The notes under the pieces were generated by a model. That model did no database searches. It saw only the letters and a list, made by a program, of their open reading frames with translations, and was not told the DNA's origin. DNA of 49,595 bases. Source: Macrostomum lignano. Its lineage: Eukaryota. Positions 15,667 through 16,546 of the stretch are shown one piece after another. The stretch spans positions 1 through 49,595 of the forward strand of contig NIVC01004019.1 in the NCBI GenBank assembly GCA_002269645.1, in the 5' to 3' direction. Numbering within the stretch: position 1 is the stretch's first letter; each line of letters begins with the position of its first letter. The translations under genes and the position numbers were made by a program.

Positions 15667-16546
15667 CAGTTGTTCCTCAATCTTTCGAAAGAGGCTGGAC
15701 TTTATCTTAAGGCTTCATCAGGATTGACCAGATCCTTCAGCCCCACCCCCATTAAGTCTCTGAACCTTCTCCATATCCTTGTCAACTTCGTTCGGACTTA
15801 GGAGCTTGGCTGCGGATTTCCACCATGTCCTCAAGCTTGTTACCATCGAACCATAGGTTCGCGGACGAAGTCCGATTGGGAACAGGAATTACCTGTGTTC
15901 CTTCAGAAGATTTCTCAACTGAAGTGGTACTTGAGGCTGTTATTGACGTACTAGAATCGGACGGAGTTCCCGCAATTTGAAGGTGTCGCCAATCACTAAG
16001 CACTTGTTTAATGTTGGTTATAATGTTTTTGTATTGATCACCATAAAGAAATTTCAATGCAAATTCTCCTGTTATAAGGGTGATTCCATTGTCTAGTAAA
16101 ATATTCTTAGGTTCCTTTGTAGTTCTATTGATGCATACATAATACAACTGATAGGTGGGATAAGAATTTTTATAGTCTAATAGTTTCTGATAATTCCTTT
16201 CACGACTTGATGAATTGTCCGTGTTATCAGAAGATTTAAGCTCTAATGCAATCTTTCGCTCAACGTGAACCAGGTCTATCTTTCTTACCTTCTCGAATCC
16301 AAAATAATTTTCTGCTAATATTTCATATAGTCTGCCTAGTCTCATTTGAATAACTTTAATCTTGTGTGAAATTATTAACTCTTCTTGGAAAAGATCATGA
16401 AGAATTTGATCATGCCCAACCTTATCATCAATTGGTTTCAGAAGAATTTCTCGAATTGTTTGCTCCATTTTTACTATAGAAACTTTAACAAGTGCTTATT
16501 TGATGACTAGCAAGGACATTGACTTCCTCACTCAGGCCACTACGTA
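15667..16546 (-). ncRNA. Group I self-splicing intron, IC1-like, 880 nt, with an embedded endonuclease ORF
   Basis: Core elements: P AAATTGCGGGAA (15978-15967), Q AATCCGCAGC (15818-15809), R GTTCAGAGACTTAA (15765-15752), S TAAGATAAAGTC (15709-15698). The P3, P4, P7, P8, P9 and P5abc pairings are satisfied. The 5' exon ends in U paired to an IGS G, and the intron ends in G. Removal restores an in-frame PLA2 motif. Confidence 0.95.
15782..16468 (-). CDS. Intron-encoded PD-(D/E)XK restriction-like endonuclease (putative homing endonuclease)
   Basis: Intact 228-aa ORF with its own TAAAAATG start. KVIQMRLGRLYE...KIDL...ALELKSSDNTDNSSS...YQKL gives an E..D..ExK pattern. The last ~70 codons overlap the ribozyme core. 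Confidence 0.75.
   Translation of the reverse strand: MEQTIREILLKPIDDKVGHDQILHDLFQEELIISHKIKVIQMRLGRLYEILAENYFGFEKVRKIDLVHVERKIALELKSSDNTDNSSSRERNYQKLLDYKNSYPTYQLYYVCINRTTKEPKNILLDNGITLITGEFALKFLYGDQYKNIITNIKQVLSDWRHLQIAGTPSDSSTSITASSTTSVEKSSEGTQVIPVPNRTSSANLWFDGNKLEDMVEIRSQAPKSERS

Follow-up and report, generated by a model that had tools for sequence, protein, structure and literature searches.

Group I introns (RF00028) in Polinton-like viruses integrated in nuclear genomes were reported in 2025 from the protists Paulinella micropora, Desmodesmus armatus and Rhodomonas lacustris (PMC12220804). In Rhodomonas, these introns are 309-376 bp in length, lie in a gene of about 50 codons upstream of the capsid gene and have no annotated homing endonuclease. 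Otherwise, nuclear group I introns appear to be known from the rDNA of protists and fungi, and in animals only from the mitochondria of early-branching lineages. A restriction-enzyme fold acting as homing endonuclease within a group I intron is exemplified by I-Ssp6803I of a cyanobacterial tRNA intron (PF11645, PDB 2ost; PMC3424549), which has a 17-bp target. Parvovirus VP1-type phospholipases are carried by group 2 Maverick-Polintons (bioRxiv 10.64898/2026.06.19.733378) and by entomopoxvirus-associated Polinton-like viruses (PMC11296320). No intron is mentioned in the former study, while in the latter group I introns occur only in the reference list.

The window analysed here is a whole contig of 49,595 nt of the flatworm Macrostomum lignano. 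It contains an 880-nt group I intron on the minus strand, which interrupts a PLA2-integrase fusion gene of a Maverick/Polinton-like element. As in the protist cases, a group I ribozyme is located in a protein-coding gene of an integrated element. However, the host is an animal, the target is the PLA2-integrase gene and the intron encodes a nuclease. Full-text literature searches yielded no such case in a flatworm or in any animal Maverick/Polinton. The features of the gene and its intron are as follows.

16547..16678 (-), exon 1 of the PLA2-integrase gene, 44 codons from an ATG, ending ..YSFAG
15667..16546 (-), group I intron, 880 nt, phase 0, starting TA and ending TG, with 15667 as the terminal G
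16533..16551 (-), P1, formed by the last 5 exon bases plus the first 3 intron bases and intron bases 7-14, with a 3-nt loop and the U-G wobble at the splice site (U 16547 with G 16537)
16509..16532 (-), P2 hairpin, 8 bp with an 8-nt loop
16487..16511 (-), 5' strand of the long-range helix P2.1 (8 bp plus a perfect 12 bp) that closes the ORF-bearing loop
15988..16008 (-), 3' strand of P2.1
15782..16468 (-), intron ORF, 228 codons (16468..15785) plus stop, an Eco47II-family PD-(D/E)XK nuclease and candidate homing endonuclease; the predicted folded domain is residues 1-166 (16468..15971), residues 167-228 are a read-through of the ribozyme core
15676..16059 (-), extent of the Rfam RF00028 match (ribozyme core, P3 to P9)
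15744..15985 (-), P3 (15985..15978 with 15751..15744), enclosing P4 (15974..15969 with 15816..15811), P5 (15964..15960 with 15824..15820), the branched P5abc-type extension (15959..15825, GAAA loop in P5b) and P6 (15810..15764)
15698..15758 (-), P7 (15758..15754 with 15702..15698), the guanosine-binding helix, enclosing P3' and P8 (15742..15710)
15675..15694 (-), P9 hairpin with a GAAA loop
14443..15666 (-), exon 2 (15666..14446, 407 codons; stop 14445..14443), starting PGTNLD.., with the PLA2-like part in residues 1-66 (15666..15469), including YYHD, and the rve integrase core at about 15243..15013

The original prediction of a group I intron at this position was confirmed. RF00028 is the only Rfam family above its gathering score in the window. 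It matches with 88.9 bits (threshold 50, E 1.7e-21) over model positions 1-253 of 253, with near-consensus J3/4-P4, P4'-P6, J6/7-P7 and J8/7. All twelve strand pairs that had been proposed are present at consistent positions and are fully complementary when G-U pairs are counted. P7 comprises 5 bp, with one pair swapped on both sides relative to the Rfam consensus. An unconstrained minimum-energy fold of the 900-nt precursor recovered P1, the P2 hairpin, the long-range 12-bp helix, P4/P5 and the branched P5 extension with its GAAA loop, and the folds yielded z values of -2.0 and -3.1. The P2 hairpin was not part of the original prediction. Rfam aligns a P2 at 16055..16034, but this segment lies inside the ORF and carries mismatches, and we regard the hairpin at 16532..16509 and the long-range helix as the real P2 and P2.1. 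The presence of P2 and P2.1 and of a P5abc-type extension with a GNRA loop fits the IC1-like anatomy. No convincing P10 pairing between the 3' exon start and the guide region was found. Neither another group I intron nor a capping ribozyme was detected in the window, even at E values up to 1.

The exon joint is confirmed by uninterrupted relatives. When the exons were aligned as separate rows, exon 1 ended at column 244 and exon 2 started at column 245. The relatives P0016 (75% identical) and P0306 read ..YSFAG and then PGTNLD.. without interruption, and exon 1 aligns to their N-termini without a gap. For exon 2 alone, PF08398 matches from residue 1 at profile position 13 with E 9.1e-4 and 19.9 bits, which is below the cut-off of 23.9. 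The Y-x-G-x-G and H-D motifs are present across the two exons, and dozens of uninterrupted relatives carry PF08398. The integrase core was identified by PF00665 (E 5.8e-10 in the search with exon 2 and E 4.4e-10 in a separate search).

The element and its surroundings comprise the following features.

1..16900 (strand not applicable), Maverick/Polinton-like element, cut by the contig start on the left and with its right end somewhere between 16679 and about 17200
1..17376 (strand not applicable), GGNCC-free zone, which covers the whole element and ends at the first site, inside the host AK3 exon
12218..13582 (-), major capsid protein (double jelly roll), intact, 454 aa
11428..12217 (-), A32-like packaging ATPase gene, not continuous (at least 1 frame change)
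3470..5834 (-), primase-helicase replication gene (Prim-Pol, PriCT_2, D5_N), not continuous (at least 2 frame changes)
17232..17468 (-), host adenylate kinase (AK3-type) exon
19102..20078 (-), host RIO3 kinase exons

The capsid protein matches PF21738 with E 1.7e-13. The ATPase match to PF04665 (E 2e-4, 21.4 bits) is just below the cut-off of 22.8, and its Walker A motif lies in a different frame from the rest. No protein-primed polymerase was found among the ORFs scanned, although one beyond the contig start cannot be excluded. Hence, the element is Maverick/Polinton-like, corresponding to 'group 2' (bioRxiv 10.64898/2026.06.19.733378), rather than a Polinton in the strict sense, which qualifies the 'Polinton gene' of the original prediction. 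In its gene content, with capsid protein, a probable A32 ATPase, rve integrase, a probable PLA2 domain and a primase-helicase in place of the protein-primed polymerase, it resembles the phospholipase-carrying elements mentioned above. No terminal inverted repeat was visible, with the left end lying off the contig, and no adenovirus-type cysteine protease domain was found. NCBIfam searches with ten ORFs of the element and PDB sequence searches with two unknown ORFs gave no result.

The flanking genes support an animal genome. The AK3-type exon matches PF00406 (E 2.5e-10) and the RIO3 exons match PF01163 (E 9.7e-32). The RIO3 piece is 97% identical to M. lignano PAA93645.1, whose 90%-identity cluster includes PAA48910.1, and these M. 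lignano proteins are found on contigs of up to 1.5 Mb. A fused AK3-RIO3 gene model of M. lignano also exists.

The original prediction missed that about 78% of the intron is an intact ORF. The encoded protein scores 29.2 bits against PF09553 (cut-off 25.9), and 14 of 15 family members hit only this family. The D..ExK residues (D65, E76 and K78) are invariant or nearly so. The AlphaFold2 model has a pLDDT above 90 for most of residues 1-166 and below 50 for residues 167-228. With Foldseek, the best match of the model was EcoO109I (1wtd, E 1.5e-4, TM 0.52), an enzyme with a GGNCC core (its site is probably RGGNCCY), followed by other PD-(D/E)XK nucleases. I-Ssp6803I belongs to a different PD-(D/E)XK family and did not appear among the sequence or fold matches. 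A search of the PDB with the nuclease profile gave only a chance hit (E 0.17). No match was found in a phage collection for the nuclease domain (tblastn) or the ribozyme core (blastn), and a pattern-plus-tblastn scan of bacterial and archaeal genomes with the nuclease alignment found no relative. Eco47II and EcoO109I are bacterial enzymes paired with a methyltransferase, whereas no methyltransferase domain was found in any ORF of the element that was scanned. The predicted-disordered tail that overlaps the ribozyme core is 74% identical to the relatives P0001/P0002, while the folded domain is only 58-60% identical, which indirectly supports constraint at the RNA level. An Eco47II-family protein has not been reported as a homing endonuclease.

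At the protein level, the same intron was observed at the same site in at least two diverged lineages. The relatives P0015 and P0313 are ORFs that run out of the 3' part of the intron (P9, or the J6/7-P7 region read as protein) into exon 2. P0306 and P0314, which belong to the same 90%-identity clusters as P0015 and P0313, respectively, are uninterrupted, and this is the pattern that a homing intron leaves. Of 147 relatives, 51 are uninterrupted over the site and 14 begin exactly at the loop Pro. Nuclease and integrase relatives sit on contigs of the same lengths (4853, 14527, 39760, 10272, 18491 and 65222).

Homologues of Eco47II cut GGNCC (PMC10305163). This site occurs 0 times in 1..17376, against 17.9 expected, and 67 times in the rest of the contig. 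It is the single outlier, and the only absent pattern, among 136 patterns of this form (P 1.6e-8). None of 2000 dinucleotide shuffles reached 0, the minimum being 6. The flanks on the same contig are not depleted (54 observed, 41.7 expected). The exon joint reads GGT|CC, and a GGNCC is always produced by Gly-Pro codons. We also counted Gly-Pro dipeptides in proteins of relatives as a proxy for site avoidance. Capsid relatives have 0 against 12.4 expected, but integrase relatives are no more depleted than a control family of RIO kinases (ratio 0.61 against 0.56), and we treat the proxy as non-discriminating.

Taken together, we consider it probable that this is a genuine mobile group I intron, inserted in phase 0 in the Gly-Pro codons of the calcium-binding loop (..G|PG..) of the parvovirus-type PLA2 domain that forms the N-terminus of the rve integrase. 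The mechanism is inferred. In the precursor RNA, an external guanosine would attack after the U of the U-G pair in P1, the terminal G would then enter the P7 pocket and the exons would be ligated, giving an mRNA for a 451-residue PLA2-integrase. The Eco47II-type nuclease would cut intron-less alleles at the GGNCC of the joint, and repair from an intron-bearing copy would spread the intron. The nuclease seems to have kept a short, restriction-enzyme-like specificity; the element would therefore have lost every other GGNCC, while the intron splits the one site that cannot be removed without changing the PLA2 loop. Self-protection appears to work by loss of sites. Splicing in vivo, cleavage specificity, homing and the reason for the absence of the site are inferences from sequence, without RNA evidence. 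In addition, the P1 loop is only 3 nt, homing endonucleases normally have long sites and a 5-bp cutter would also hit the host genome. The ORF overlaps P3 to P6, so translation and folding would compete. It has A at -3 and G at +4 and lies behind the 48-codon ORF that exon 1 forms in unspliced RNA, and how an intron ORF would be translated from a nuclear transcript in an animal is unknown. The findings give a sequence-level handle on how a selfish nuclease, its intron and its viral host genome shape one another, and mark these elements as recently exchanging genomes, because homing needs co-replication.

A more far-reaching reading is possible but remains tentative. The nuclease might derive from a restriction enzyme, still cut GGNCC and serve both for homing into intron-less rivals and as a weapon against host or competitor DNA during replication, with the element protected without a methylase by the purging of its sites. 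This would be a eukaryotic-virus counterpart of a restriction system, and the first group I intron and homing endonuclease known in an animal nuclear genome.

It is less likely that the intron and nuclease were active in an exogenous ancestor and no longer splice or cut in this endogenous copy, leaving the integrase gene simply interrupted. The frame changes in the ATPase and primase-helicase genes and a hairpin-plus-tandem-repeat block inside the element are in line with such decay, although the frame changes could also be errors of the long-read assembly. On the other hand, both exons, the nuclease ORF with its catalytic residues and the ribozyme core are all intact, and the identity of the capsid protein on two contigs suggests recent copies. 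We also regard it as unlikely that the GGNCC-free state reflects another GGNCC-specific enzyme (of a host, a co-infecting virus or a related element) or a compositional quirk. The specificity of the intron nuclease is inferred only from its family, TTAA is also under-represented in the element and Gly-Pro scarcity in proteins of relatives is no stronger than in a control family. However, the one absent pattern is the site of the very family to which the ORF belongs, and the intron sits inside the one GGNCC that the protein sequence enforces.

Chance resemblance or an ordinary spliceosomal intron is refuted by the covariance-model E value and by the TA..TG ends, which are not GT..AG; the nuclease ORF and the occurrence of the same insert at the same codon in diverged relatives also speak against it. 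An assembly chimera or contaminant, in which an element of a protist (food alga or culture contaminant) was joined to flatworm DNA, is very unlikely. The element does lie at the contig end with only one junction, group I introns in such elements were so far reported from protists only (PMC12220804) and its closest relatives are all unnamed metagenome proteins, taxon names having been obtained only for the host genes and the capsid cluster of the window. Yet the identical capsid protein lies on a second contig of 142,601 nt, copies of at least 90% identity annotated as M. lignano lie on contigs of up to 60,889 nt, and the flatworm AK3 and RIO3 genes lie 0.6-3 kb from the element on the same contig.

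On the minus strand, an insert of 880 nt (16546..15667) separates two open reading frames. The first is an ORF of 44 codons, which starts at the ATG at position 16678 and ends with ..YSFAG, whereas the second, an ORF of 407 codons, starts with PGTNLD.., carries the YYHD motif and continues into an rve integrase core. The insert begins with TA and ends with TG. When the entire window was compared to Rfam, the group I intron model was the only family to score above its gathering threshold (88.9 bits against 50, E-value 1.7e-21), with a match at 16059..15676 that covers all 253 model positions. 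A permissive scan yielded nothing related and no capping ribozyme. All twelve strand pairs named in the original prediction of a group I intron were found at mutually consistent positions and are fully complementary. The observation is confirmed.

The unconstrained fold of the 900-nt precursor (z -2.0; core alone z -3.1) independently recovered P1 with the U-G wobble at the splice site, the perfect 12-bp long-range helix, P4 and P5, and a branched P5 extension in which P5b ends in a GAAA loop. It also revealed an 8-bp P2 hairpin that was not part of the original prediction. A convincing P10 pairing was not seen.

The splice model was examined with the two exons as separate queries, and three results fix the joint to the nucleotide. 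The PLA2-like family PF08398 of Pfam matches exon 2 from its first residue, at profile position 13 of 80, as is expected if exon 1 supplies the first dozen positions. In a MAFFT alignment with the exons as separate rows, exon 1 ends in column 244 and exon 2 begins in column 245, with no gap. The relative P0016 (75% identical) reads straight through ..HIPGYSFAG PGTNLDKRL.., as do dozens of more distant PLA2-integrase proteins of 440-470 residues that carry PF08398 and PF00665 in one ORF. The intron therefore lies in phase 0, between the Gly and Pro codons of the calcium-binding loop of a parvovirus-type PLA2-like domain.

About 78% of the intron consists of an ORF of 228 codons (16468..15785) in the loop closed by the long-range P2.1 helix, which the original prediction had overlooked. 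It matches the Pfam family RE_Eco47II above the curated cut-off (29.2 against 25.9 bits). Fourteen relatives with identities of 47-61% exist in metagenome assemblies, and 14 of the 15 aligned sequences (the ORF of the window and 13 relatives) hit this family and no other. In the alignment, D65 is kept in at least 90% of the sequences and E76 and K78 in all of them, which is the D..ExK signature of PD-(D/E)XK nucleases. Eco47II was previously assigned to this superfamily (PMC3424549). Modelling with AlphaFold2 based on this alignment resulted in a confident model for residues 1-166 and in pLDDT values below 50 for residues 167-228. The best PDB match of the predicted fold in a Foldseek search was the type II enzyme EcoO109I (E-value 1.5e-4, TM 0.52), followed by other PD-(D/E)XK nucleases. 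The tail of the ORF, predicted to be disordered, reads on through P3 to P6 of the ribozyme. It is 74% identical to that of the relatives P0001 and P0002, while the folded domain is only 58-60% identical. We interpret this as constraint at the RNA level and as indirect evidence that the relatives carry the same ribozyme.

The genes next to the intron code for a double-jelly-roll capsid protein, a probable A32-like ATPase and primase-helicase domains (Prim-Pol, PriCT_2, D5_N). The following features of the element and its surroundings were also observed:
939-1787, plus strand: ORF of 283 codons with an endonuclease VII / HNH-type domain (PF02945, E-value 5e-8), a second nuclease gene in the element on the opposite strand, followed by two ORFs without a family match
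8744-9064 and 6756-7022, both minus strand: small ORFs with an F5/8 type C (discoidin) domain and a C3HC4 RING finger, which are unusual cargo for such an element
7437-8024: hairpin with 31-nt arms that are 97% complementary (7437-7467 / 7507-7537; weak plant-miRNA-like Rfam hits below threshold), followed by four tandem repeats of 132-135 nt, between the RING-finger ORF and the capsid-side genes; it looks like a nested MITE-like insertion
17103-17203: near-perfect palindrome with 50-nt arms (78% complementary), between the right end of the element and the host AK3 exon
17468..17232: host AK3 exon
20078..19767: piece of the host RIO3 kinase

The element is Maverick/Polinton-like and of the kind recently called group 2, in which PLA2 is common and the replication module is variable (bioRxiv 10.64898/2026.06.19.733378). 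A protein-primed polymerase, a protease or a terminal inverted repeat was not found, although the element is cut by the start of the contig. Two genes of this copy are not continuous, with at least one frame change in the packaging ATPase gene and at least two in the primase-helicase gene. Long-read consensus errors cannot be excluded as the cause.

The host is an animal. The RIO3 piece is 97% identical to proteins of Macrostomum lignano, one of which lies on a contig of exactly 49,595 nt, the length of the window, and others on contigs of 0.28 and 1.5 Mb. A gene model of M. lignano fuses AK3 and RIO3, which matches the AK3 exon next to the element. The capsid protein is recorded identically on two contigs, the longer of which is 142,601 nt in length, and a copy with at least 90% identity is annotated as M. 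lignano on contigs of up to 60,889 nt. A chimeric or contaminant origin is therefore unlikely, although only one junction between element and host lies on this contig.

Evidence for mobility of the intron was obtained from protein sequences alone. Relatives of the nuclease and of the integrase lie on contigs of the same lengths (4853, 14527, 39760, 10272, 18491 and 65222), and two pairs of alleles show presence and absence of the intron. P0015 (79% identical to exon 2) is an ORF that starts in the P9 hairpin of the intron read as protein and runs into PGTNLD, while its 90%-identity cluster also holds P0306, which is uninterrupted. In a second lineage with an identity of only 46%, P0313 reads through the J6/7-P7 region of a ribozyme (..MEKVQRLDG..) into PGTRLD, while P0314 of the same cluster and P0023 are uninterrupted. 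Of 147 relatives, 51 cross the site uninterrupted, 14 begin exactly at the loop Pro behind unrelated residues and the rest start downstream. Presence and absence at one codon among near-identical alleles is the pattern that a homing intron leaves.

Homologues of Eco47II cut GGNCC (PMC10305163), and the site of EcoO109I is probably RGGNCCY. The exon joint reads GGT|CC. Since Gly-Pro codons (GGN CCN) always create GGNCC, every uninterrupted allele with Gly-Pro in the loop must carry the site, and the intron destroys it. GGNCC occurs 67 times in the window, but the first site is at position 17377, inside the host AK3 exon, and there is none in 1..17376. For 1..16900, 17.9 sites are expected. Of 136 patterns of the form XYNZW, GGNCC is the single extreme outlier (P 1.6e-8), while the flanks hold 54 sites against 41.7 expected. 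None of 2000 dinucleotide-preserving shuffles reached zero (mean 17.9, minimum 6), and a third-order Markov model still expects 11.3 sites. TTAA is also under-represented in 1-16900 (98 observed, 158 expected, P 2e-7), though far from absent, which is possibly a coding-sequence effect.

The simplest reading of these values is that the nuclease of the intron has kept a short, restriction-like specificity, that the element has been purged of its sites and that the intron occupies the one site that the PLA2 motif makes unavoidable. Fourteen uninterrupted PLA2-integrase relatives (P0021, P0029, P0034 and 11 others) have Gly-Ala instead of Gly-Pro in the calcium loop, which removes the GGNCC at the insertion point. 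These may be nuclease-resistant alleles, although it is speculative to regard them as escape alleles. Counts of Gly-Pro in the proteins of relatives, used as a proxy for site avoidance, did not discriminate.

From these results we infer that guanosine-initiated splicing restores a PLA2-integrase of 451 residues, that intron-less alleles are cleaved at the GGNCC of the loop with copying of the intron by repair, and that the element protects itself by loss of sites. In unspliced RNA, the frame of exon 1 stops four codons into the intron. The AUG of the nuclease follows 64 nt later in a good context, with A at -3 and G at +4.

Hits of RF00028 in Polinton-like viruses were reported in 2025, but only for protist hosts, in a different gene and without an endonuclease (PMC12220804). 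PLA2 domains in such elements are known (PMC11296320; bioRxiv 10.64898/2026.06.19.733378), and PD-(D/E)XK homing endonucleases are known from other families, such as I-Ssp6803I and the Vsr-like I-Bth0305I (PMC3424549). Literature searches yielded no case for flatworms, Macrostomum or Mavericks, and no homing endonuclease of the Eco47II type.

Outside the element, large G + C-rich satellite arrays were observed at 30037-35635 (periods of 22, 31, 13 and 26 nt) and 38486-40442 (10 and 26 nt), together with a (GACA)n tract at 19564-19800 between RIO3 exons. These produce long spurious ORFs. A match resembling a histone 3' stem-loop is located at 46938-46984 on the plus strand, but falls below the threshold (22.4 bits against 34).
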